From Macrostomum hystrix (Eukaryota; Animalia; Platyhelminthes), in assembly GCA_950097015.1 (NCBI GenBank), contig CATNEN010000034.1:2108001-2172000 (forward strand): 64,000 nucleotides of DNA, given 5' to 3'. The first letter of the stretch is position 1; each line of letters starts with the position of its first letter. Under the pieces are notes generated by a model that saw nothing but the letters and a program-made list of their open reading frames with translations, did not search any database and was not told the DNA's origin. A program made the translations under genes and the position numbers. Shown piece after piece: positions 43,038-59,136 of the stretch.

Positions 43038-43318
43038 TTAAGTTCTAGAATGAGCATGTGGCGTTTTAAATTTCGGCTGCATTACTTCAACGACTACGCG
43101 CCTCTTGCAGCCGCCTTGACGCCTGCAGTCCAGCCAGTGTCGCAGGCGAAACACAGCGCAGAAGTAGCGGTGCGTCTTGAAAGCAGTCAAGAGTCGCAGC
43201 AGACGAAACGCGACTTCAAAGTCGCTGTTGCATTGCTGAAACGTTTCCGTAACGAACGCGATTAGAAAGTTCAGTAAGTTAAGGCCGACAAAGAAGAAAA
43301 AGAGTGCGTGAATGACGA
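43038..43318 (-). pseudogene. TRPV-like channel, 3' fragment (S6 helix and C-terminus) cut off by transposon insertion
   Basis: Encodes LVIHALFFFFVGLNLLNFLIAFVTETF (TRP S6 LLNxLIA motif). It joins in frame to the 57569+ fragment once the element and one TSD copy are removed. Confidence 0.88.
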
Positions 43319-43326
43319 GGACCATC

Positions 43327-46300
43327 ACTGACGTAAACCTAGCCTCATGCCATCCTCACGATATTTGAAAACAACGTGCGATGGCTGCGATACTGCCTAA
43401 AATTAGCAGATACGATGAAGACAGATATGCAATGCCTGTTTTTGCATCGATATATGCCATGGTCGTGCGTGTGAATGGCTCTAAAATATGAAAGCATGAG
43501 GATGGCGTGAGGATGGCGTGAGGATGGCTTCCCAAAGATGCACATATCAACTAATTCGTGCGATGATTTCTAAATCCTACATAGGCACGTGCCAGTAATA
43601 ACTGTGTGAAATTTCAAATCAAGGCATCAAATTCTTTGCCTTTTAGGCACGTCGGAGAAACTAAATCGGCTGAAGTATGTGGTGTCTTGCTGCGATAAAA
43701 GAACGTATTATAGGGTACATTGCGAAAGCACACATATCGCATAGCTACTCTCCTAAACTACAAAAATTCGAAAACCGCAACTTTGCGATGGCCCTAGTTG
43801 CTGAGATCGACGTCATTATACATGAACATAAAATGTCACAAATTTCTCCCCGGCGTTATCAAAATTATTCCAAGCAAACTAACAAAACATTTGCCGCTGG
43901 AGACAACAATGTCGACAAAAACTAAAGTCTAACTTAGAGTTAAAACCAAAATTAACATTAAAGATATTCGATTATATCCGAGAAGACTGCACTCAGTCTG
44001 TTGTTAGTTATTGCATCAGTTACTTCTCCCACTTTGAATGTAAGCAAGACTTGTGCAAGGACCACTCTTCTTCTAGTGGTCCTTGTACTTATGACCTAGT
44101 GTACTGAATAGTGTACTTGGACACTCATAAAGAACAAAGATTAGGCCTATACAAGCAATGTAAACAAGTCATTGACTCATTGGTTGGCAACACTGTGCAT
44201 TTTTTACCTCATTCTCAGTGCAGTAGTGTCAATTATTGGTGTGTATCAGTGCAAGCTCATTTATTGCTTACCTACATTACAATCCTACATAATTAATTAT
44301 ATTGAGCATCTACTTGCCATTCATTTCAATTGGTTCTTTCCATTGGCATTATTATACATTATAATTGAGTTCCTCATTTTTGTACATTTATATACATGGA
44401 ATCAAACAAATGGTTGACAAGTCCCATGAAATTTATAATGCCATGCAGTCGCAGATAAAGAAGAAAAAAGTATTTTACGTTTCTTGGAACATCAAATAAG
44501 GCTGATAAGATGAGATAGATGATAAGATAATATAGACTAATATTAATAATATTAATTTTCTATCTTGTCTTTAATCAACTCATTAAACTCTAACTAACTT
44601 ACTTAATATGAAATTCTTGACATCGTTCCTTCATGTTCCATACATTCTTATCTTTATTTTTGTGCTGAAAATAGGTCAGTTGTTACTATTTGTCTTTGTC
44701 TAGACTAAACATTTATTTTGCATTAACAACATGAAGTTCTTGTTCTTTTGTGTTCTATATATTCTTGTCTATATATTTGTGTTGAAAGTAGAGCACCAAT
44801 TGTTATCTGTCTAGACTAAACATCCATGGTCCATAAAGAACATGAAATTCTTGTTCCTTCATGTTCCGTCTATTCTTGTCTATATATTTGCGTTGAAAGT
44901 AGAGCACCAATTGTTATCTGTCTAGACTAAACATCCATGGTCCATAAAGAACATGAAATTCTTGTTCCTTCATGTTCCGTCTATTCTTGTCTATATATTT
45001 GCGTTGAAAGTAGAGCACCAATTGTTATCTGTCTAGACTAAAAATCCATGGTCCATAAAGAACATGAAATTCTTGTTCCTTCATGTTCCGTCTATTCTTG
45101 TCTATATATTTGCGTTGAAAGTAGAGCACCAATTGTTATCTGTCTAGACTAAACATCCATGGTCCATAAAGAACATGAAATTCTTGTTCCTTCATGTTCC
45201 GTCTATTCTTGTCTATATATTTGTGTTGAAAGTAGAGCACCAATTGTTATCTGTCTAGACTAAAAATCCATGGTCCATAAAGAACATGAAATTCTTGTTC
45301 CTTCATGTTCCGTCTATTCTTGTCTATATATTTGCGTTGAAAGTAGAGCACCAATTGTTATCTGTCTAGACTAAACATCCATGGTCCATAAAGAACATGA
45401 AATTCTTGTTCCTTCATGTTCCGTCTATTCTTGTCTATATATTTGCGTTGAAAGTAGAGCACCAATTGTTATTTGTCTAGACTAAAAATCCATGGTCCAT
45501 AAAGAACATGAAATTCTTGTTCCTTCATGTTCCGTCTATTCTTGTCTATATATTTGCGTTGAAAGTAGAGCACCAATTGTTATCTGTCTAGACTAAACAT
45601 CCATGGTCCATAAAGAACATGAAATTCTTGTTCCTTCATGTTCCGTCTATTCTTGTCTATATATTTGCGTTGAAAGTAGAGCACCAATTGTTATCTGTCT
45701 AGACTAAAAATCCATGGTCCATAAAGAACATGAAATTCTTGTTCCTTCATGTTCCGTCTATTCTTGTCTATATATTTGCGTTGAAAGTAGAGCACCAATT
45801 GTTATCTGTCTAGACTAAACATCCATGGTCCATAAAGAACATGAAATTCTTGTTCCTTCATGTTCCGTCTATTCTTGTCTATATATTTGTGTTGAAAGTA
45901 GAGCACCAATTGTTATCTGTCTAGACTAAACATCCATGGTCCATAAAGAACATGAAATTCTTGTTCCTTCATGTTCCGTCTATTCTTGTCTATATATTTG
46001 CGTTGAAAGTAGAGCACCAATTGTTATCTGTCTAGACTAAACATCCATGGTCCATAAAGAACATGAAATTCTTGTTCCTTCATGTTCCGTCTATTCTTGT
46101 CTATATATTTGCGTTGAAAGTAGAGCACCAATTGTTATCTGTCTAGACTAAACATCCATGGTCCATAAAGAACATGAAATTCTTGTTCCTTCATGTTCCG
46201 CCTATTCTTGTCTATATATTTGTGTTGAAAGTAGAGCACCAATTGTTATCTGTCTAGACTAAACATCCATGGTCCATAAAGAACATGAAATTCTTGTTCC

Positions 46301-47045
46301 TTCATGTTCCGCCTATTCTTGTCTATATATTTGTGTTGAAAGTAGAGCACCAATTGTTATCTGTCTAGACTAAACATCCATGGTCCATAAAGAACATGAA
46401 ATTCTTGTTCCTTCATGTTCCGTCTATTCTTGTCTATATATTTGCGTTGAAAGTAGAGCACCAATTGTTATCTGTCTAGACTAAACATCCATGGTCCATA
46501 AAGAACATGAAATTCTTGTTCCTTCATGTTCCGTCTATTCTTGTCTATATATTTGCGTTGAAAGTAGAGCACCAATTGTTATCTGTCTAGACTAAACATC
46601 CATGGTCCATAAAGAACATGAAATTCTTGTTCCTTCATGTTCCGTCTATTCTTGTCTATATATTTGCGTTGAAAGTAGAGCACCAATTGTTATCTGTCTA
46701 GACTAAACATCCATGGTCCATAAAGAACATGAAATTCTTGTTCCTTCATGTTCCGTCTATTCTTGTCTATATATTTGCGTTGAAAGTAGAGCACCAATTG
46801 TTATCTGTCTAGACTAAAAATCCATGGTCCATAAAGAACATGAAATTCTTGTTCCTTCATGTTCCGTCTATTCTTGTCTATATATTTGCGTTGAAAGTAG
46901 AGCACCAATTGTTATCTGTCTAGACTAAACATCCATGGTCCATAAAGAACATGAAATTCTTGTTCCTTCATGTTCCGTCTATTCTTGTCTATATATTTGC
47001 GTTGAAAGTAGAGCACCAATTGTTATCTGTCTAGACTAAACATAT
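43327..47045 (+). repeat. Left terminal inverted repeat (~1.4 kb unique plus ~20 x 111-bp array)
   Basis: Starts ACTGACGTAAACCTAGCCTCATGCCATC. The motif CATCCATGG recurs every 111 bp from 44821 to 46930. Confidence 0.95.
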
Positions 47046-47052
47046 ATTTTCT

Positions 47053-48465
47053 ATGAAGAACATGAACTATATGCTAAGTTTTCAATTTTTCCAGGCCTTC
47101 ATCAAGGACCCATATTACAAATTTGAGCCCAACGGGCCATTGCCGGATTTCATCCCTAAAGATATTGTTGTCGGCATTGAACTGTCTGCTGCCTGTGTCC
47201 GTGGTGCTGCTAGTATCCTTGGCATAAAATTTGCTAATAGCAAAATTCGAACTGTGAAAGGTACTTCATTTCAATACCTGACTGAAGATGGTAATGCACT
47301 TGCATACAGTAATGGTATAGCTATCTTTCGCACTCGAAGTATGGAAGCTGATTGCCGTCAGGATTTTTCAAAGCGGTGCAAGGCTGCAGAAGCGGGTAAG
47401 GTGTGGCTCGAAAGCAATGGATGGAAGGTTGTGGACAAGGAAATGTGTCGCCCGTCTGTTGCGGAGCACATATCAGAGGCGTTGAGGCATCTCGAATTGG
47501 CCGCATCGTTTTCGCCAGTGGAATTAATTTCTGTATTGAAAATTTCTATCGCCTGCATTCGGCAGTTGCAAGCCGAAGTTCGTGTAGCTGCAGCAGTTGG
47601 GAGTGTGGACATGCCAGCGACAGCGGGAGAACGAAAGGCGGCGGCAGCGAGGGAGCGAGAGGCGGCGAAAGAGCGAGAGCAGGTGGCGGCGAGGGAGCGA
47701 GAGGCGGCGAAAGAGCGAGAGCAGGCGGCGGCGGCTAGGGAGCGAGAGGCGGCGAAAGAGCGAGAGCAGGCGGCGGCGGCGAGAGAGCGAGAGTCGGCGA
47801 AAGAGCGAGAGCAGGTGGCGGCGAGGGAGCGAGAGGCGGCGAAAGAGCGAGAGCAGGCGGCGGCGGCGAGGGAGCGAGAGGCGGCGAAAGAGCGAGAGCA
47901 GGTGGCGGCGAGGGAGCGAGAGGCGGCGAAAGAGCGAGAGCAGGCGGCGGCGGCTAGGGAGCGAGAGGCGGCGGAAGAGCGAGAGCAGGCGGCGGCGGCG
48001 AGAGAGCGAGAGTCGGCGAAAGAGCGAGAGCAGGTGGCGGCGAGGGAGCGAGAGGCGGCGAAAGAGCGAGAGCAGGCGGCGGCGGCGAGGGAGCGAGAGG
48101 CGGCGAAAGAGCGAGAGCAGGCGGCGGCGGCGAGGGAGCGGCGAGAGGCGGCGGCGGCGAGGGAGCGAGAGGCGGTGGAAGAGCGAGAGCAGGCGGCGGC
48201 GACGAGGGAGCGGCGAGAGGCGGCGGCGGCGAGGGAGCGAGAGGCGGTGGAAGAGCGAGAGCAGGCGGCGGCGACGAGGGAGCGGCGAGAGGCGGCGGCG
48301 GCGAGGGAGCGAGAGGCGGTGGAAGAGCGAGAGCAGGCGGCGGCGGCAAAGGAGAGAGATGGAGATGAAAAGAAGAAGCGACGAAAGAGGAAGGCTGATC
48401 TGAGTGATATTACTGGTGGGACAGGTCGTAAGACTTATTTTACCAGAAGAATGGTCCAGATGTAA
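47053..48465 (+). CDS. Transposon accessory gene: unknown N-terminal domain, long E/R/A-rich helical repeat, basic NLS
   Basis: 470-codon open frame; a probable splice acceptor (TTTTTCCAG) at 47094 means the true start may be upstream. Non-repetitive ~190 aa, then AAAREREAAKEREQ repeats (about 47640-48360), then KKKRRKRK. Convergent with the transposase. Confidence 0.7.
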   Translation: MKNMNYMLSFQFFQAFIKDPYYKFEPNGPLPDFIPKDIVVGIELSAACVRGAASILGIKFANSKIRTVKGTSFQYLTEDGNALAYSNGIAIFRTRSMEADCRQDFSKRCKAAEAGKVWLESNGWKVVDKEMCRPSVAEHISEALRHLELAASFSPVELISVLKISIACIRQLQAEVRVAAAVGSVDMPATAGERKAAAAREREAAKEREQVAAREREAAKEREQAAAAREREAAKEREQAAAARERESAKEREQVAAREREAAKEREQAAAAREREAAKEREQVAAREREAAKEREQAAAAREREAAEEREQAAAARERESAKEREQVAAREREAAKEREQAAAAREREAAKEREQAAAARERREAAAAREREAVEEREQAAATRERREAAAAREREAVEEREQAAATRERREAAAAREREAVEEREQAAAAKERDGDEKKKRRKRKADLSDITGGTGRKTYFTRRMVQM

Positions 48466-48569
48466 ATTAATGCTCTTGGGTGTGCTATTATTTTCTCCTT
48501 TACCGCTTTTTGGTATTCGGCGGAACAGTTTTGAGCAGCAATCGCTATGCGAAGAACTACTTGAGCACG

Positions 48570-48635
48570 TCGCCAATAAGGATGATTATTGCTTTGCAGA
48601 CAAGACTGCTAAGCAATAATCATCCTTATTGGCGA
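48570..48635. other. Perfect 25-bp inverted repeat (66-nt hairpin)
   Basis: TCGCCAATAAGGATGATTATTGCTT (48570-48594) is the exact reverse complement of 48611-48635. An inner GCAG/CTGC pair extends the stem around a 6-nt loop. Confidence 0.9.
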
Positions 48636-50223
48636 ATAAGCGAGCGAGTAAGTTTTACATCTGGTGCCCGAGAGAGTAAATGGAATGTTTTTTGTGTGTG
48701 CTGTCGACAAATTTGCTGGTTGACATTGTCGTTTTCTAATGTTAAGATGTTTGCTGTCTGTAGTAATGTCGAAGGACCACAGCTAATACGAGAATCTATA
48801 ACTGCAATTGACGTCACCTCTTAGTACGCTTGCAATTCTGTCTTCTATGGAAATGCATTTTAATTTTTTCTATCGTAATCTGTTACTTATGCTGCATGGC
48901 AAGAAGAATACAACTTTTTTCATCGCATGGCATAAAAAGTCTGCTGTTATAACGCGTATTCTGCAAGTTGGTCTTGCAACTTTTCAGTTCGGCAAAAGCC
49001 TTTAAAGGGAAATATGAATTTTAATTTTTTTCTTATTTTGAACCAGCTTTAACTGGACAAAATGCAGCTCGTCGCACAAAATAGAAAACTTTAACCCTCC
49101 GAAACTGTACATGTAGCACACAAAAATTAAAACGAAACTCGTTCATGAGTAAACTGAAAGCGAGAATAAGAAGTATATTATTTTGAGTATACTAAAAGGG
49201 CAAAATGAAAACAACGAATTGCGCGACCAAAAAGTACATAAACGCTCAATTCTGCTGTCTGCTGGGCTGGGCGCCATTGCCCACATAAAAGTATAGAAGC
49301 GTAGAAGACATACATTGCCATTTCGACAACGACATAAACACTGCAAATGCGTTAGTATGAGGAGCAGCACAAATGAGCATATCAGGGTGCGAATGTGCTA
49401 CAAATGTAGAAATGCAACGTTAGCTAGAGTCATAAGAATTGGATAGCTGGGTTAACATAAGCAGACCACATCAAAAGAGAACAAGTTGAAGGACTATTTA
49501 CGGTGTTTTTACGGTATAGGACGGTACTATATTAGGAATTGGAGAACGCCGGCTAGGTTAGAAACGAGTACACTAAGATCTTAAAAGCGTCGCATCTGCA
49601 AGAAGGGAGTAGATGCAGGGTAGGGAAGAAGAGGTGATCCGTAATTTCTCCATTGTTAATTTCTACACTATTTGAGAGGGATTGGATATTTACAACAAAT
49701 TTCTTTATCATCCATATCATCCATCATCAATTGGCTCTGTGACGAAAAACAACATGGACAAAATATTCTCATTATCATGTTCAAAAAGCGGGCAACACTT
49801 CCTCAGTGCGTTTTTGCCATGTGACACCCATGCGGAAAAAACACTATCAGCAGTATATATCCTGATGCATGAATCAAACATAAAAACAATGACTTTAAAA
49901 TGCCCAAATACTCGAGTGCAAGGTCAAGAACAAGCCCATAGTATTATTATTGCTATTGGCAACTGACTACAATTGGCAAAAATTTGAAAGAGACCTAAAA
50001 ATCTGCAGATCGTCGAGATCTGAAAATTGGCGACAAACAAAATAATATCTGCAATCATTTGCCAACTCTTCTCGTCGTGCATTTGTGCGCTCTGTCGCTC
50101 TACACATCACCCCACACAAAAATGGTTGGTACTATATACTCGTAACATGAAATATTCTGTTGCCCTAAACTTCTGCAAACTACAAGCAGAAAATTTAACA
50201 CCATGTCCTTGAGGCATAGACCA

Positions 50224-53200
50224 TCAGCAACGGCACGTTCCGACGATGTAGACTAAAAGAGTCGGTCTGCCACGGTTCCGCTGCCGACCCTCCTTATAAA
50301 ATGGCAGTTTGCCTTGAGCACTAGATGCTGCGTCATCGTAGATGTAATGGGTGTTTCCACGAACGATGCGGCCGTAGAAATGACCGGGCACAGCAATTGT
50401 TGTGCAACAGAGATTGTAACTAAAATTAGTGAATAAAATTCCATACATTCGAAGCTTGCACCCAAGATACTAGTCATTAACTAGTTAAACCGTTAACTTT
50501 CTGTTAACGAAGTCAAGTTTTTTATTAACGATGCCCAACACATGCTGAAATTAGCTAGCCTGAATATGTAAGAATCACAAACGGCGCATTGAACCAGTCA
50601 ATCGGTAGCATACATTGTAGTCCCATCATGAAGAAACTACGCGGATGACATCGGAGTCCTTCCACAGCTGCCTGTGAACTTCCCCATCGAAGTCTTTCTA
50701 AAGCCCTCTCAGTCCATGCTTTAATCTCCAAATATTATCAAGCACCGGAAGTTGATATTCAAGAGAAATGTCAAAGGCAGCGTGCACTTACTGAATGGAT
50801 CCGTCCTCCGGGAAAGGATGCATGACTGAGTGAGGTGGGAGAGTCTCCCGACCCGTTGCCGAATCTGGAATGCCCACAACCACAACTGGCGGTGGAAAGT
50901 TGGCAAAGCGGGGATGGTGTAAGTAGCGCGAGTCGAGGTTACAGTCGAGGCATTCCACACAGCGGTCGCCAGAAGTAAATACTTCCCGAAGATAGGCCTC
51001 GGGAGACATTAAGATCCGGCGGCTGTCACCAGAGGGCGCTTGCTCCGGAGTTGGAAGCACAAGTTGGTAGAAGCGCCGTGTCTCCTCTTTGCGGCAGAAG
51101 GGGCAACCCACACGCTGAGTTATAGCATGAAACTCTCCGAGCACCCAGGTAGTAACATCCAGCGCTCCCTGGAATAGGCTTATATCGATTTCCTTGGAAG
51201 TGCTGGACCGGCGCCTCACGACAGCGCCACGCCGGTGCAATTCAGGACAACGCAGGAGCAGCCGAGCCCGAGCGAAATGGATACTCTCATGAGTAAAAGC
51301 CTGGACAGCTGCATGCAGAAAGTCAGTCAGGGGAGCGCAATCATCGGGAAGTCGCTGGACTGCCTGCCGAAACTCGGAATGGTCTCGCATTGCAAACGTC
51401 AAAGCTGTCAGCAAATGGTCAACTGTACAAGCATTCGAGACATGAACTGTTAAAACATCGTTGCCGTAAGGCACGTTACGAGAAGTCGAGTAGTTCCTCA
51501 GCATTGCAAACTGCACTTCTCTGGATGACTGGGCAAAGATAGCGGTTCGCTTCGGCGAAGTGTAGGTGGCTGATGGACGCTTGCGCTTCTTGTTTACGAT
51601 ACCAGCAAAATGTGTTCCTTCCTCTGTCAGATTCTCCTCGAACTCCATCGCTGTGAACGGATTCTCGGCTGAACGTTGGCTTGGACGAACGGAATTTCCA
51701 ACAGGCACAGAGGGTCCAGAGGCAGATGCGGAGCCTGGCACAGAGGGTCCAGAGGCAGATGAGGCAGATGCGGAGCCTGGCACAGAGGCAGATGAGGCAG
51801 ATGCGGAGCCTGGCACAGAGAGTCCAGAGGCAGATGCGGAGCCTGGCACAGAGGGTCCAGAGTCAGATGCGGAGCCTGGCACAGAGGGTCCAGAGGCAGA
51901 TGAGGCAGATGCGGAGCCTAACACAGAGGGTCCAGAGGCAGATGAGGCAGATGCGGAGCCTGGCACAGAGGCAGATGAGGCAGATGCGGAGCCTGGCACA
52001 GAGGGTCCAGAGGCAGATGCGGAGCCTGGCACAGAGGGTCCAGAGGCAGATGCGGAGCCTGGCACAGAGGGTCCAGAGTCAGATGCGGAGCCTGGCACAG
52101 AGGGTCCAGAGGCAGATGCGGAGCCTGGCACAGAGGGTCCAGAAGCAGATGAGGCAGATACGGAGCCGGGCACAGAATTTTCGTTAGTAAGAACAGACGC
52201 CCCTGGGGTAGTACGTGGCATTGTATCATTCTGCATAAAATGAGTTGGATGCTCGTTGGAGGAATTTGCTTCACTATCCGAGCAATCGGAGGTGCCGCTG
52301 CGAACGCCTTCCTGTTGCAAAAAGACTCCCAATGGTCGCAGGAACTGGTGGTACACTCCTGGCAGCTTTCTGTGCATTGTCCTAACAAAAGTCATGGCAC
52401 TTGGCCGCTGGTCATCAAGGAGGCTGCCCTTAATGAGGCGAATGCAGAGTTCAGTACTGCCCTCCTGGAAGCTGTGCAACGACTCAGGGGTTGCAGCATA
52501 CATTTCTTCCCGGGCGTAACGCCAAGGCTCAGACATTATGCTCGTAAAGAGCGGCAGGTACGGCAACATGACGTCAAGGAGCTTGCGTGCCAACGGAGTA
52601 CAGCGGAATGGATTCGGAACAGCGCGGAAATCTTCCTCGTCCAGGTTGGCTGAAAATCGATTCTCCAGTTGTTGGTGAACATTTTGAAAGATCTGCCAAA
52701 ATGGAGATGCCCTCTTGATTGTATTGTCGGGTCTAGCGTAGAGCAGTTCCTCCGCAGGAATAAATTCCTCCACATCATCCAGTTCGTCGGCAATGGCGGC
52801 GTCCAGCAGCTGCTTTGCAGCCACATTCTGGCCACCCAATGTGAGCTCCTCCATTGGAAGTTCTAGAACCTCCAGAGTTGGTGCAAGGAGCAGACCAAAG
52901 AATGCTGTAACTACCATTTTAGCTCTGGCGAGGCACGTTGTGCGTACAAGCGCACCAAAGACGTGCTTCCAATAGCACGAGGCTCTTTGTCCTGCCATGA
53001 GGTCACTATTGTCCAGCTCGTAAACTCGTGCACAATATGGCTCCTGCCAAGTCCCACGAGGCAGAATCCCCGAAGCTCACGCTGTGAGAAGGACCGACGG
53101 AGCACGGCGCAGCAGAGTCGTAAATATGGAAGAATGTCCATTCCATGGTGGGCATAGGTAAGTGCAGCCAGGCTGGGGATGTTGAAGTCAGTGACAGCTT

Positions 53201-54580
53201 GAAGCATTGTTAGGCTAGCAACGGATTTCCGTGCTGCTGTGATGAATGTGTCCAATGCAAACTTTATAGTGGACTTAGTCTGCGAGTTGGACAGAAGCAG
53301 CATAATTGGCACTGGAGCTTCCCCTTCAATTGGATGATGCAGAGCCAGGGCATGCAAGTAAGCACCGTGTCCATCGGCCAGGGGCGCACCAGTTGAGTCC
53401 AGACCGACACGAATCGGTAAATTGCGACAGTGAAGCACTTTTAGAAGCCGAATTGCTTTGTCCATATAGAGCAGGGCAAAGCGCGGGTGGCCAACACCTG
53501 GTCGTACGTTCACATCTCTGATGAACGGGGGATCGAGCATTTCCCCGTTCATTAGGATATCCATGATTTGATCCTGGGAAAACCTTTCTTTCAACCGCTC
53601 CTGAGATGCCGCAGTTCGCAGCACGCTAGAGGTCGGTACTTCCGGTGTAATGCCATCCGTAGCCAGCTCTGCAGACACAGAGTATGCGTTAGAGGAGTTG
53701 ACTCGCTGGGCCAACTCTTCTCGGCGATGACCTCTCAGTGGGCGTGGCTTCACAGTGTGCGGTTTAAGGGGGCCGCTCGCCCTCAGAGTCCACAGCAACC
53801 TACTATCCTGTGATGTTAGCCTGAAGCGAGCGTTGCAGGAGGTGACCCGGCAGTAGACATCTGCCGTCACCTCTGCCGAGGTAGCTGCCACCCTGCTTCG
53901 CTGCACGCATAAGCAACAGGAGAGCATAGTCGAGAAGTGCGGAAAGATGAAGTCCTGCCAGTTCTTTTGCAGACGTCCGCTGCTATCTAGGATGATCGCC
54001 GTGTGCAGTCTCGCATGAAAAATCGGCTGCTCACTGCAAAGAAATGACTCTTATTTGTATACATGCGATGAAGTTAGGGTCATGATGTTTCAAAAGAGCC
54101 CTGACTAAAGACCATTGTAAACAGGATTCATGCATGACACTGCAAAAGTTGATCTAAAAATCCAGCAAAATACTTACTCCTCATTGGCGCTTTCTTTGTC
54201 TAGGACTTCATCGTGGACAGGATCGTCTGATATATCTGTTAAAATCTTTACTGCGTTCCTGCGAAACTGGTCATACAGCCAGCGTCGGTGAATGAATGAG
54301 TCCTCAAAGCCCAACAGAATGCATGCCCTGGACCACACTGTCCCTACAGGTGTGGGTCCTGGCAGAGGCTTGGTAGCAACATCTGAGTAACTCAGACGAC
54401 GAGAGGCAAACAGGTTCTGAATGTCATCGACGGAGACGGTATTCCAATCTGAAATTAACATGGCAAGTCACTTAAATAGTCTGTACCATGAAAAAAAGGA
54501 GTCATATGCAACGTCTGCATGAGTGTTGCACAAAGTCTGAAGCAATCAGAAAAGACAACAGGGCAAAAAAACTTACTCAT
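50224..54580 (-). CDS. NOF/MULE-like DDE transposase fused to a C-terminal USP-like cysteine-protease domain (~1237 aa; one frameshift)
   Basis: Predicted exons 54580-54577 (ATGA|GTAAGT), 54448-54178, 54033-50792 and 50419-50224, with GT-AG junctions. Phases match if one base is added near 52987. Motifs: N-terminal VW...LY..FRRN helix region; CxxxxC..H zinc-finger-like segment; D1 VGLDSTG, D2 AVTDFN, RSH, LPYLPLFTSIM, E in GSTELCIRLIK; then SNAC, CPFC/CLDC, GHF and YDD. Confidence 0.8.
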
Positions 54581-54689
54581 TAGAAAGTCTGCTAATAATT
54601 GCCAGTCAAGCCCACAAAATCTGAAATGAAAGTGACACGTCTCATGTGCATAGCTTGAACATATAGATACATAGATGTACCACTATAAT

Positions 54690-57568
54690 AATGACTGAAC
54701 ATGAAGGAACAAGAATTTCGTGTTCTTTATGGACCATGGATTTTTAGTCTAGACAGATAACAATTGGTGCTCTACTTTCAACGCAAATATATAGACAAGA
54801 ATAGACGGAACATGAAGGAACAAGAATTTCATGTTCTTTATGGACCATGGATGTTTAGTCTAGACAGATAACAATTGGTGCTCTACTTTCAACGCAAATA
54901 TATAGACAAGAATAGACGGAACATGAAGGAACAAGAATTTCATGTTCTTTATGGACCATGGATGTTTAGTCTAGACAGATAACAATTGGTGCTCTACTTT
55001 CAACGCAAATATATAGACAAGAATAGACGGAACATGAAGGAACAAGAATTTCATGTTCTTTATGGACCATGGATGTTTAGTCTAGACAGATAACAATTGG
55101 TGCTCTACTTTCAACGCAAATATATAGACAAGAATAGACGGAACATGAAGGAACAAGAATTTCATGTTCTTTATGGACCATGGATGTTTAGTCTAGACAG
55201 ATAACAATTGGTGCTCTACTTTCAACGCAAATATATAGACAAGAATAGACGGAACATGAAGGAACAAGAATTTCATGTTCTTTATGGACCATGGATGTTT
55301 AGTCTAGACAGATAACAATTGGTGCTCTACTTTCAACGCAAATATATAGACAAGAATAGACGGAACATGAAGGAACAAGAATTTCATGTTCTTTATGGAC
55401 CATGGATGTTTAGTCTAGACAGATAACAATTGGTGCTCTACTTTCAACGCAAATATATAGACAAGAATAGACGGAACATGAAGGAACAAGAATTTCATGT
55501 TCTTTATGGACCATGGATTTTTAGTCTAGACAGATAACAATTGGTGCTCTACTTTCAACACAAATATATAGACAAGAATAGGCGGAACATGAAGGAACAA
55601 GAATTTCATGTTCTTTATGGACCATGGATGTTTAGTCTAGACAGATAACAATTGGTGCTCTACTTTCAACACAAATATATAGACAAGAATAGGCGGAACA
55701 TGAAGGAACAAGAATTTCATGTTCTTTATGGACCATGGATGTTTAGTCTAGACAGATAACAATTGGTGCTCTACTTTCAACGCAAATATATAGACAAGAA
55801 TAGACGGAACATGAAGGAACAAGAATTTCATGTTCTTTATGGACCATGGATTTTTAGTCTAGACAGATAACAATTGGTGCTCTACTTTCAACGCAAATAT
55901 ATAGACAAGAATAGACGGAACATGAAGGAACAAGAATTTCATGTTCTTTATGGACCATGGATGTTTAGTCTAGACAGATAACAATTGGTGCTCTACTTTC
56001 AACGCAAATATATAGACAAGAATAGACGGAACATGAAGGAACAAGAATTTCATGTTCTTTATGGACCATGGATGTTTAGTCTAGACAGATAACAATTGGT
56101 GCTCTACTTTCAACACAAATATATAGACAAGAATATATAGAACACAAAAGAACAAGAACTTCATGTTGTTAATGCAAAATAAATGTTTAGTCTAGACAAA
56201 GACAAATAGTAACAACTGACCTATTTTCAGCACAAAAATAAAGATAAGAATGTATGGAACATGAAGGAACGATGTCAAGAATTTCATATTAAGTAAGTTA
56301 GTTAGAGTTTAATGAGTTGATTAAAGACAAGATAGAAAATTAATATTATTAATATTAGTCTATATTATCTTATCATCTATCTCATCTTATCAGCCTTATT
56401 TGATGTTCCAAGAAACGTAAAATACTTTTTTCTTCTTTATCTGCGACTGCATGGCATTATAAATTTCATGGGACTTGTCAACCATTTGTTTGATTCCATG
56501 TATATAAATGTACAAAAATGAGGAACTCAATTATAATGTATAATAATGCCAATGGAAAGAACCAATTGAAATGAATGGCAAGTAGATGCTCAATATAATT
56601 AATTATGTAGGATTGTAATGTAGGTAAGCAATAAATGAGCTTGCACTGATACACACCAATAATTGACACTACTGCACTGAGAATGAGGTAAAAAATGCAC
56701 AGTGTTGCCAACCAATGAGTCAATGACTTGTTTACATTGCTTGTATAGGCCTAATCTTTGTTCTTTATGAGTGTCCAAGTACACTATTCAGTACACTAGG
56801 TCATAAGTACAAGGACCACTAGAAGAAGAGTGGTCCTTGCACAAGTCTTGCTTACATTCAAAGTGGGAGAAGTAACTGATGCAATAACTAACAACAGACT
56901 GAGTGCAGTCTTCTCGGATATAATCGAATATCTTTAATGTTAATTTTGGTTTTAACTCTAAGTTAGACTTTAGTTTTTGTCGACATTGTTGTCTCCAGCG
57001 GCAAATGTTTTGTTAGTTTGCTTGGAATAATTTTGATAACGCCGGGGAGAAATTTGTGACATTTTATGTTCATGTATAATGACGTCGATCTCAGCAACTA
57101 GGGCCATCGCAAAGTTGCGGTTTTCGAATTTTTGTAGTTTAGGAGAGTAGCTATGCGATATGTGTGCTTTCGCAATGTACCCTATAATACGTTCTTTTAT
57201 CGCAGCAAGACACCACATACTTCAGCCGATTTAGTTTCTCCGACGTGCCTAAAAGGCAAAGAATTTGATGCCTTGATTTGAAATTTCACACAGTTATTAC
57301 TGGCACGTGCCTATGTAGGATTTAGAAATCATCGCACGAATTAGTTGATATGTGCATCTTTGGGAAGCCATCCTCACGCCATCCTCACGCCATCCTCATG
57401 CTTTCATATTTTAGAGCCATTCACACGCACGACCATGGCATATATCGATGCAAAAACAGGCATTGCATATCTGTCTTCATCGTATCTGCTAATTTTAGGC
57501 AGTATCGCAGCCATCGCACGTTGTTTTCAAATATCGTGAGGATGGCATGAGGCTAGGTTTACGTCAGT
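54690..57568 (-). repeat. Right terminal inverted repeat (~13 x 111-bp array plus ~1.4 kb unique)
   Basis: CATGAAGGAACAAGAATTTC recurs every 111 bp from 54700 to 56032. Ends ...GGCTAGGTTTACGTCAGT. Confidence 0.95.
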
Positions 57569-59136
57569 GGACCATCGGGCTGTCAAGGCTGTATGTGATC
57601 ATGTTCATTATCGTTTTTATGCATGAGTAGAGAGACAGAATTCCTATCTCAAAGTCTGGCGAATCGACCAGGATATAGAAGTCCAGACTAAAAAGTACAA
57701 TCCAATAAAACAACAGGGGTAGTGCTGCCATGAAACTGGACAGCATCGAGTGAAAGATAAAGAACAGCTTGCCAGTTGGCCTGGACACAATCTCCAAGTA
57801 CTGCGCAAAGTGAAGCAAAGTGAAAGAAATAAACAATGTGTTTGATCCGATGAACATTTCCTGGGTTGTTACGCCAACATTATCGTTTCGGAGTGGGGGC
57901 AGAAGGGTGTAAAAGTCAGGTTTTTGTAGAAAACTTGACGATGTACAGAAAATGGCTCCGCTCAGGAGGGCAACGCACAGGTAGGTGTCGAAAACTGAGC
58001 GACGCACGAAGCAGCTGTGGCGACGTGGATTCGGGAGCATCAACCGTCTCTGACCTCGCTCGTAGATGTAGAAAAACAACTTTATCGTGACGACGAAGGA
58101 TTGGAGTATCAAAATCGTCGCTATCATCGAAATGCTGCCATTTACCGATAAGAAAATCTCAGTGCATGACTTTCGCTTCACAACCTGCAGCTCGAAGAAT
58201 TGATAGTACAGGCTTGTGTTGTAAAGGGACGTCTTGTTGTAGCCTTCACGCGCAGCGGCGGCAATTGTGGCACGATTGCAATGAAGCAAATTGCCGATGG
58301 ACGAGACGAACATCATGACGGACTCAAGGACGCCAGTCAGCAGAAACATCACCGTAGGCACACTTAAAATCAGCACACGCAGAACTGTTAGCATTCGAGT
58401 TTGTTGGATGTACAGGCGAAACCATTGTTGAATTTAAAGGATCTTCGAGTAGTTTAGACTTCTTCAGAGCCTCCACCTGGCTAGACCCCACGTAGGTGAG
58501 CAGATGCAGAGGACTCATTTGGCATCGGCTGCCATGACACAGGTCATAGTCTGTCAGATCATAGAGCCTCACCGTCCAACCGCCAGATCGACTAACCGAG
58601 CTCAGTAGATAGCTGGGAAGGTGCAGCAGCTTGCGAGCCAGTCTGAACGCGCCAAACTTAACACAAGCCTCAAGTGGTCTGAGTCCGGTCGAGTCCTCTT
58701 GCAAAATTAGACTGCTCAAAATGTGAGGCGTTCTGGCTAGTGTCGCCAGGATTGCCGCCTCGAACGCTTTGGCTCGTTTATACCTCGGCGCAAACATCTG
58801 GCAGCGCGCCAGACTGTGCAGTACGGTGCTGCCGTCGGGTTCCAGTTGGGCCAGGTGGTCAGCACAGTCGGCCAGCAGCAGATCAAATACCCGCACAGAC
58901 TGGAGCAGAATTGCCAGGTGAATGGGGTAGGCGAATTGCAGACTCAGCAATCCATACTTTGTGGACTTCTGTCGACGGCATCGACCCGGGCACCGCATCG
59001 CTGCGGGTAAGCCGTCCACAGTGTCGCACAGCGGCTGAGCTAGTTTTCCTGCCAGGTCCGGCCCCATTGCCTGCACGAAGGCCACCGGGTCATCATCAGC
59101 GAGTGCCTGCAGGGCCTCTTCCGATGAATAATGCAT
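57569..59136 (-). pseudogene. Intronless TRPV-like cation channel, 5' part (ankyrin repeats, S1-S5, pore); disrupted
   Basis: ATG at 59136. Ankyrin-like YPIHLA, GSTVLHSLA and GLRPLEAC; TRPV linker LYDLTDYD (compare TRPV5/6 LYDLTEID); multiple hydrophobic helices. A 1-bp frameshift near 58434 links the two ORFs (PL|IQQWFRLY). Truncated by the transposon just before S6. Confidence 0.85.

Follow-up and report, generated by a model that had tools for sequence, protein, structure and literature searches.

The window, i.e., the whole 64,000-nucleotide stretch of Macrostomum hystrix DNA that was analysed, holds a putative, strongly diverged TRPV-like channel gene on the reverse strand, split by a 14,242-bp DNA transposon whose long arms are foldback-like (43327-57568, no strand assigned). 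The gene lies in three pieces, which were searched separately, by reference. The N-terminal piece (58438-59136), a putative ankyrin-repeat and linker domain running to ...KSKLLEDP, begins with the start ATG at 59134-59136 and is 70% identical to residues 43-270 of the paralogue L014, which is intact as a single ORF of 652 aa (L014:1198-3153, reverse strand). The listed first ORF (58324-59136) leaves this frame and stops at 58324 after 270 codons. The middle piece (57570-58433), an open frame of 289 aa that is 56% identical to L014 residues 269-551, comprises the pre-S1 region, S1-S5 and the pore helix and loop, and ends in ...YSLDSPMV. The C-terminal piece (43038-43325), 70% identical to L014 residues 546-637, encodes S6 (LLNFLIAF), the TRP-helix region and a C-terminal strand; its ORF (43038-43328) starts with MVLVIHALFFFF... 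and its stop codon is at 43038-43040. The three pieces thus tile L014 end to end, and the fragments do not come from different channel genes, an outcome that the original prediction had named as its refutation.

The element is flanked by two copies of an 8-bp target-site duplication, GGACCATC, on the left at 43319-43326 and on the right at 57569-57576 (neither with an assigned strand); an 8/8 match at these fixed positions has a chance probability of about 1.5e-5. Both copies encode Met-Val (ATG GTC) in the same codon phase, so a single copy of GGACCATC reads through in frame, as had been proposed, and the two MV dipeptides occupy one and the same pair of columns in the L014 alignment. With the element in place, the ORF at 57564-58394 ends in ...SPMVH at a premature TGA on the reverse strand (57564-57566), which consists of element bases 3-5; the CAC (H) codon before it joins the final base of the duplication to two element bases. 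The expected CAC TGA in the first bases of the arm was therefore found. The element entered at the first turn of S6, with the pore helix and filter loop left upstream, consistent with its earlier placement between pore loop and S6.

In L014, the two flanks of the element meet on a single stretch of 8 nt, AATGGTCC, encoding ...LDSAMVLIIH.... At the level of sequence, L014 can serve as a paralogous, not allelic, empty site with a single target copy. An intact paralogue or allele had been suggested as a search target: the paralogue was recovered, and no second haplotype or allelic empty site was found in the assembly. The original term null allele would imply polymorphism and so goes further than the assembly does.

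The gene as assembled carries another change: in the interval from the ankyrin/linker domain to S1, one extra base in cctTTAAAtt (58431-58440, reverse strand) produces a +1 frameshift. This is either an error of assembly or a further lesion. The single extra base was identified relative to two paralogues by DNA alignment and three-frame translations. An intron was considered as the cause of the frame change and rejected, because the protein alignment runs unbroken up to the one extra base and onward from it. The original prediction held that excising the element rebuilds the pre-insertion ORF exactly; since the frameshift remains relative to both paralogues, the assembled ORF would stay broken after excision. 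The prediction also allowed only a precise excision to restore the frame, which asks too much: a footprint of any net length 3n would leave the frame intact. Beyond the two lesions, the gene showed no additional stop or indel and keeps the family-conserved residues, and the three pieces gave pN/pS values against the paralogues of 0.19/0.57, 0.29/0.75 and 0.18/0.74. The clean frames and conserved residues suggest that the gene was probably under purifying selection until recently.

The inserted element

The element was delimited by its complementary arms, tandem arrays and other copies in the genome. Its ends read ACTGACG...CGTCAGT, and its inverted arms are 2873 nt (2.87 kb) long and 100% complementary; the computed call includes one additional flank base per side, by chance. 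The left arm (43327-47066) contains 21.4 copies of a 111-bp unit and the right arm (54693-57568) contains 13.6 copies. Dating the insertion from the identity of the arms was rejected, because the arms are not reset or made identical at transposition. Next to the locus lie minisatellite arrays totalling about 40 kb.

The element family is low-copy in this genome, and the other copies are 97-99% identical. Three further copies, on C38, C2 and, as a miniature, C39, have termini identical to those of the element in the window and are flanked by their own 8-bp duplications (ATTGAATT, AGCTGATT and AGTTGACA, respectively). Terminal inverted repeats with a target duplication of fixed length, 8 bp, are thus present at four independent copies. 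Together with the single-copy site in L014, these copies bear out the element ends and the duplication as first placed.

A transposase-like gene (50788-53927, reverse strand) is split in the window copy into frames of 338 and 736 aa by the deletion of 1 bp from an A-run near 52988, and the copy on C2 encodes an intact transposase in a single ORF of 1024 aa. Both this deletion and the extra base in the host gene lie in short A/T runs and could be assembly errors. A second element ORF of 470 aa (47053-48465, forward strand) contains a long charged repeat. The transposase-like protein had no Pfam match, its profile matched nothing in the PDB, and the MULE-type DDE domain PF10551 matched none of the element proteins. 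A six-frame scan of the genome with PF10551 (E up to 10) gave no match at this locus and matched 57 other genome loci. Language-model features of the transposase resemble MULE (score 0.95). The AlphaFold model of the intact 1024-aa protein was too poor for a fold search (pLDDT 39). For the superfamily, MULE is only a lead.

Mutator of maize and Foldback/FB-NOF of Drosophila are long-armed DNA transposons that make insertional null alleles, and a 9-bp target duplication is usual for these families. The present element resembles them in its long inverted arms with partly tandem subrepeats, its duplication of fixed length, and an exon insertion that leads to a premature stop. However, the duplication here is 8 bp and not 9 bp, and the transposase-like protein gave no match to the Pfam MULE model, language-model features alone pointing to MULE.

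Resemblance of the gene family to TRPV channels

The gene belongs to an intronless family with at least 12 loci in the genome, and about 10 uninterrupted paralogue ORFs of 460-700 aa are present in the same assembly. No match above threshold was obtained when the three pieces and eight intact paralogues were scanned against Pfam and NCBIfam. The direct Pfam matches were weak: Ion_trans on the C-terminal (S6) piece at E 0.017, reaching the end of the profile, and Ank_2 on the N-terminal piece at E 0.0049, below the cut-off. A direct PDB sequence search of the family and a word-indexed protein search with a paralogue gave no match, and the best PDB match of a profile built from the family itself was the S6 of TRPM4 at a sub-significant E of 0.7.

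The assignment therefore comes indirectly, through intermediate relatives, a widened profile and predicted fold. The own-genome profile found 353 relatives at E up to 0.001, those named being from Macrostomum lignano and Lineus longissimus. Relatives with family-profile E values of 1e-28 to 1e-30 pass the Ion_trans cut-off and match TRPV5/6 (E about 1e-12), and relatives match TIGR00870 'trp' (down to E 1e-25). The widened profile matched TRPV6 in the PDB at E 1.9e-38, and its best 60 matches were all TRPV except for designed ankyrin proteins; apart from these proteins, the sequence matches in this search and from the relatives were only to TRPV-type chains.

A Foldseek search with the AlphaFold model of a paralogue returned TRPV-type channels throughout among the matches listed. 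In VIA-align, the model matched TRPV6 with Z 15.8 over 449 residues, with TRPA1 within 1 Z of TRPV. The fold match spans model residues 39-633, and the model's helical repeats line up with the ankyrin domain of TRPV, with residues 1-40 and 65-96 of low confidence. Confidence in the model is middling (pLDDT 63; 45-52 in the pore region). The nearest language-model neighbours are TRP channels (score 0.97). A six-transmembrane channel domain with an S5-S6 pore loop is thus recognised through the relatives and the fold, the direct match being weak. Predicted strands at residues 212-218, 221-227 and 626-631 of the paralogue model would form the linker beta-hairpin and the C-terminal strand, and the widened-profile match pairs the hairpin motif with TRPV6. 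The gene family is intronless and TRPV-like, as originally proposed, "TRPV" meaning a resemblance traced through intermediates and a predicted fold.

Like vertebrate TRPV1-6 and insect Nanchung and Inactive, the family appears to combine a putative ankyrin domain, a beta-hairpin linker (YDLTDYDL here, YDLTEIDS in TRPV6), six transmembrane helices, a pore helix, the S6 signature N-x-L-I-A, a post-S6 helix and a C-terminal strand, and TRPV is its best PDB match by both widened profile and fold (Z 15-16). The S6 fingerprint occurs as LLNFLIAF in the C-terminal piece and the paralogues. The family differs from TRPV in having no direct sequence match, with 12-16% identity in structural alignments, in a short loop between pore helix and S6, and in an intronless coding region with lineage-specific expansion to those 12 or more loci. 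It also lacks the TRP-box Trp, which the fingerprint table of PMC9242649 places at +17 after the S6 Ala, alongside S6 fingerprints of the form N-x-L-I-A; this position is Phe here and in L014 and L015, and His or another residue in distant paralogues. TRPVL is presented in PMC9242649, citing Himmel and Cox 2020, as a TRPV-like subfamily from cnidarians and annelids and a non-vertebrate sister group of TRPV. According to the same table, through which the two were compared, TRPVL also lacks the TRP-box Trp, and its S6 is given as N-x-F-I-A, as against N-F-L-I-A here.

Origin of the disrupted copy

Very probably, a cut-and-paste transposon inserted into an intronless, lineage-specific TRPV-like gene that carries a frameshift as well, leaving a young, non-functional copy. 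The 14.2-kb element, with its long foldback-like arms and 8-bp duplication, would have landed in channel coding sequence at the first turn of S6, and translation from upstream would end at the TGA, five bases into the arm. Because of this stop, any product would lack S6, the TRP helix and the C-terminal strand, and could form no pore. With the +1 frameshift as assembled, the predicted product would be a 270-residue N-terminal fragment only. The element interrupts the gene just before the last pore-lining helix, and the event is a knock-out of an ordinary and well-documented kind; if the family does function as channels, a recent loss of function in the animal would be expected.

It is quite possible, if somewhat doubtful, that the transposon is the only lesion, the frameshift at 58431-58440 being a homopolymer assembly error and the locus a very young insertional null allele. 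The extra base lies within a TTTAAA run, the sole other nearby 1-bp difference, in the element transposase, likewise alters the length of an A-run, no other defect occurs across about 640 codons, and the 100% identical arms leave little time for later mutation. However, the approximately 10 paralogue ORFs (460-700 aa) and the transposase ORFs (689-1024 aa) are uninterrupted in the same assembly, indicating that three-base runs are not generally miscalled.

If the frameshift is real, it may have come first, with the transposon later entering a pseudogene in a repeat-rich region. We consider this order rather unlikely. In its favour, the assembly does contain the frameshift, the reading frame of a third paralogue, on C32, is broken as well, which indicates that gene death occurs in the family, and the minisatellite arrays of about 40 kb adjoin the locus. 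Nevertheless, the gene has no additional stops or indels, its conserved residues are kept, and pN is well below pS; with frames this clean, any earlier gene death would have to be recent.

Long, perfectly identical arms and tandem arrays are hard to assemble, but a repeat misassembly that joined the element into the gene is very improbable given the exact 8-bp duplication around exact family termini, the same architecture at three other sites, and two flanks that abut precisely on the paralogue. That the flanks come from different genes, or that there is no channel gene at all, has next to no likelihood: Pfam gave no direct match above threshold, but single intact paralogues of 633-652 aa contain both flanks in collinear order, with a TRPV-type fold and transitive homology.

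Implications for flatworm channel genes

Members of expanded gene families are often hit by transposons, so little is learned from the event as such. The insertion does establish where a low-copy giant transposon ends and that its target duplication is 8 bp long, and it suggests recent activity of the element. For a model group of flatworms, it also points to a natural copy of a sensory-type channel gene that has probably lost its function.

A bolder reading, conceivable but improbable, is that the family is an unrecognised, flatworm-expanded, intronless TRPV/TRPVL-related subfamily, lacking the TRP-box Trp and invisible to Pfam, and that the element disrupting it belongs to a currently mobile, uncharacterised lineage of DNA transposons. 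The features named for such a lineage are the 8-bp duplication, the foldback arms of about 3 kb, and the 1024-aa transposase of the C2 copy, which has no known domain. If true, the locus would offer a natural presence/absence knock-out for Macrostomum channel genetics. Independently of this, the genome holds a sizeable intronless family, TRPV-like by relatives and predicted fold, that standard domain scans miss, which is relevant to annotators of flatworm genomes.

Insertion site and reading frame of the interrupted gene

The element was identified as a DNA transposon of 14,242 bp (43327-57568; window G000:C34:2108001-2172000 of the 220-Mb assembly), with the terminal sequences ACTGACG...CGTCAGT. 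The target-site duplication GGACCATC (43319-43326 and 57569-57576) directly abuts both ends. The interrupted gene lies on the minus strand. Its upstream ORF (57564-58394) ends with ...YSLDSPMV, a His codon made of the last duplicated base and two element bases, and a TGA formed by element bases 3-5. The downstream ORF (43038-43328, minus strand) starts with the duplicated ATG GTC and reads MVLVIHALFFFF... Taking the two pieces separately, we found that this ATG GTC has the same codon phase in each; one copy alone thus reads in frame, in agreement with the original prediction.

A paralogous empty site was found in L014, an intact paralogue (652 aa, contig C32), where the 8 nt closing the upstream flank and the 8 nt opening the downstream one fall on the same 8 nt, AATGGTCC, within ...LDSAMVLIIH.... 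With GGACCATC at both ends and concordant data from other copies, this site places the element ends and the 8-bp duplication exactly where they had been predicted. The three gene pieces, covering the N-terminal, middle and C-terminal parts, map to paralogue residues 43-270, 269-551 and 546-637. In a multiple alignment they tile the paralogue end to end, and both MV dipeptides share the same two columns. An origin of the fragments from different channel genes, the case named beforehand as refuting a single split gene, is excluded by this collinear tiling on one paralogue and by the paralogous empty site.

The MV dipeptide corresponds to paralogue residues 550-551. In the paralogue model, helices span residues 527-543 and 549-603, the second of them long, with a short loop (544-548) between them; confidence in the pore region is low (45-52). 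In the profile alignment, the downstream LH..F....NFLIA falls on S6 of TRPV6, and LNM, which lies upstream of the dipeptide, on its filter segment. The insertion is thus placed at the first turn of S6, directly past the pore helix and filter loop, in agreement with the proposed position between pore loop and S6. The adjoining part of the window (1-39436) is a mosaic of at least 12 unrelated minisatellite arrays with periods of 16-41 bp and lengths of up to 7.3 kb, many of them strongly strand-skewed.

The transposon and its other copies

The element arms are 2873 nt long and complementary at 100%, although as called by the tool they take in one chance flanking base per side. They are unequal: the left arm (43327-47066) holds 21.4 copies of a 111-bp tandem unit and the right arm (54693-57568) holds 13.6, yet the common 2873 nt are identical. 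The terminal 400 bp recur at 100% identity in two more large copies, on contigs C38 (8.9 kb) and C2 (13.3 kb), and are also found in partial or miniature copies. The copies on C38 and C2 and a miniature one on C39 each carry their own 8-bp duplication (ATTGAATT, AGCTGATT and AGTTGACA). A MITE-like miniature derivative of about 220 bp (L008, G000:C39:15388505-15388728) consists of the termini only and has its own 8-9-bp duplication. A TTAA-type precise exciser was ruled out by the 8-bp duplication.

The element contains a plus-strand ORF of 470 aa, which includes a charged repeat, and a minus-strand transposase-like gene; neither had a Pfam match. A six-frame genome scan with the MULE model matched 57 other loci and not the element locus. 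Language-model features resemble MULE transposases (score 0.95), an affinity that we regard only as a lead. In this copy, loss of 1 bp from an A-run (AAA vs AAAA) breaks the transposase-like ORF at about 52988, whereas the C2 copy (L039:5419-8493) has a single intact ORF of 1024 aa. Mobility of the present copy, if any, would therefore depend on another copy. More distant relatives also occur in the genome, their open frames spanning 700-950 aa.

Identity of the channel family

Pfam matches for the gene pieces stayed below threshold, with Ank_2 at E 0.0049 and Ion_trans, at its S6 end, at E 0.017; eight intact paralogues had none. Neither a PDB sequence search nor a word-indexed protein search matched the family. 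A profile built on nine paralogues from this genome (A1) retrieved 353 proteins from a representative library at E <= 0.001 (132 at E <= 1e-10); those with names come from a flatworm, Macrostomum lignano, and a nemertean, Lineus longissimus. Several of these relatives exceeded the Ion_trans cut-off and matched TIGR00870 'trp' with E values between 1e-14 and 1e-25. Searched singly against the PDB, A1 relatives found only TRPV-type chains (TRPV5/6 at E ~1e-12), and the alignment covered residues 116-594 of one relative, P0004. A widened profile of 39 sequences (A2) reached TRPV6 at E 1.9e-38 and, after it, TRPV5, V3, V2, V4 and V1.

For the closest intact paralogue, the AlphaFold model (pLDDT 63) predicts a linker beta-hairpin and a C-terminal strand. 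The Foldseek matches listed were TRPV-type channels throughout. VIA-align ranked TRPV6 best (Z 15.8, 449 residues aligned across model residues 39-633), followed by TRPV1, TRPV2 and Nanchung-Inactive at Z ~15, with TRPA1 within 1 Z and TRPC, TRPN and TRPM at 10-12. Language-model neighbours were TRP channels (score 0.97). The TRP-box tryptophan is listed as a TRPV fingerprint and as absent in TRPVL (PMC9242649). Unlike TRPV channels, the paralogues lack it: the position, 17 residues past the S6 alanine, is Phe in the subfamily and variable in distant paralogues. The S6 N-F-L-I-A is kept, and a TETF stretch resembles the TRPV GETV. On sequence and predicted structure, "TRPV-like" is a fair description, one that falls short of TRPV membership given the absence of this tryptophan.

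The intact C32 paralogues, of 652 and 633 aa, are each encoded by one uninterrupted ORF. In alignments A1 and A3, the loop that joins the pore helix to S6 is unusually short in the paralogues. Among adjacent paralogues, an N-terminal stretch is identical although the membrane domains differ; it spans about 230 aa for the head-to-head pair on C32 (L014:1198-3153 and L015:775-2673) and about 120 aa for the cluster on C29 (L026, L027, L031 and L035). This pattern looks like gene conversion. The reading frame of a third paralogue in the C32 cluster (L020:1400-1600, ~2595215-2595229) is also broken. This paralogue differs by 16 nt in length within a loop and matches L014 exactly further downstream, as would a pseudogene or a mosaic produced by gene conversion.

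A second break in the assembled gene and the age of inactivation

The N-terminal ORF (58324-59136) is out of frame with the membrane ORF (57564-58394). In three-frame translation, frame A reads ...KSKLLEDPL and frame B goes on with IQQWFRL..., matching EDPLTRQWLRL of the paralogue. DNA alignment with two paralogues located exactly one extra base in cctTTAAAtt (58431-58440). An intron was ruled out because the protein alignment is unbroken across this site. The assembled gene therefore encodes only a 270-codon N-terminal fragment. The extra base lies in a short A/T run and may be a real mutation or an assembly error. The only other 1-bp difference found nearby, that in the transposase, likewise makes an A-run longer or shorter. 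A generally error-prone assembly is unlikely, since some ten paralogue ORFs and several long transposase ORFs run through without interruption.

Contrary to the proposal, excision would not rebuild the pre-insertion ORF exactly, since the assembled frameshift would remain after element removal. The claim that only precise excision restores the frame is also overstated: logically, any footprint of net length 3n keeps the frame, and leaving both duplication copies (+8) would not.

Besides the insertion and the frameshift, no stops or indels were found over about 640 codons, and residues conserved family-wide are retained. Non-synonymous differences from the paralogues are far below synonymous ones; across the three pieces, pN/pS is 0.19/0.57, 0.29/0.75 and 0.18/0.74, and pS approaches saturation. 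These patterns suggest a long-diverged paralogue under constraint that was inactivated recently. Transposon arms are not reset at transposition, so their perfect identity gives no insertion date; the intact duplication and clean ORF pieces are better evidence for recency. The observation originally made is confirmed and well supported. Its interpretation is supported in part: the locus holds a non-functional copy of an intronless TRPV-like gene, split by the transposon. The assembly shows a second break, and the need for precise excision is overstated. The insertion of a transposon into a gene is an ordinary kind of event.
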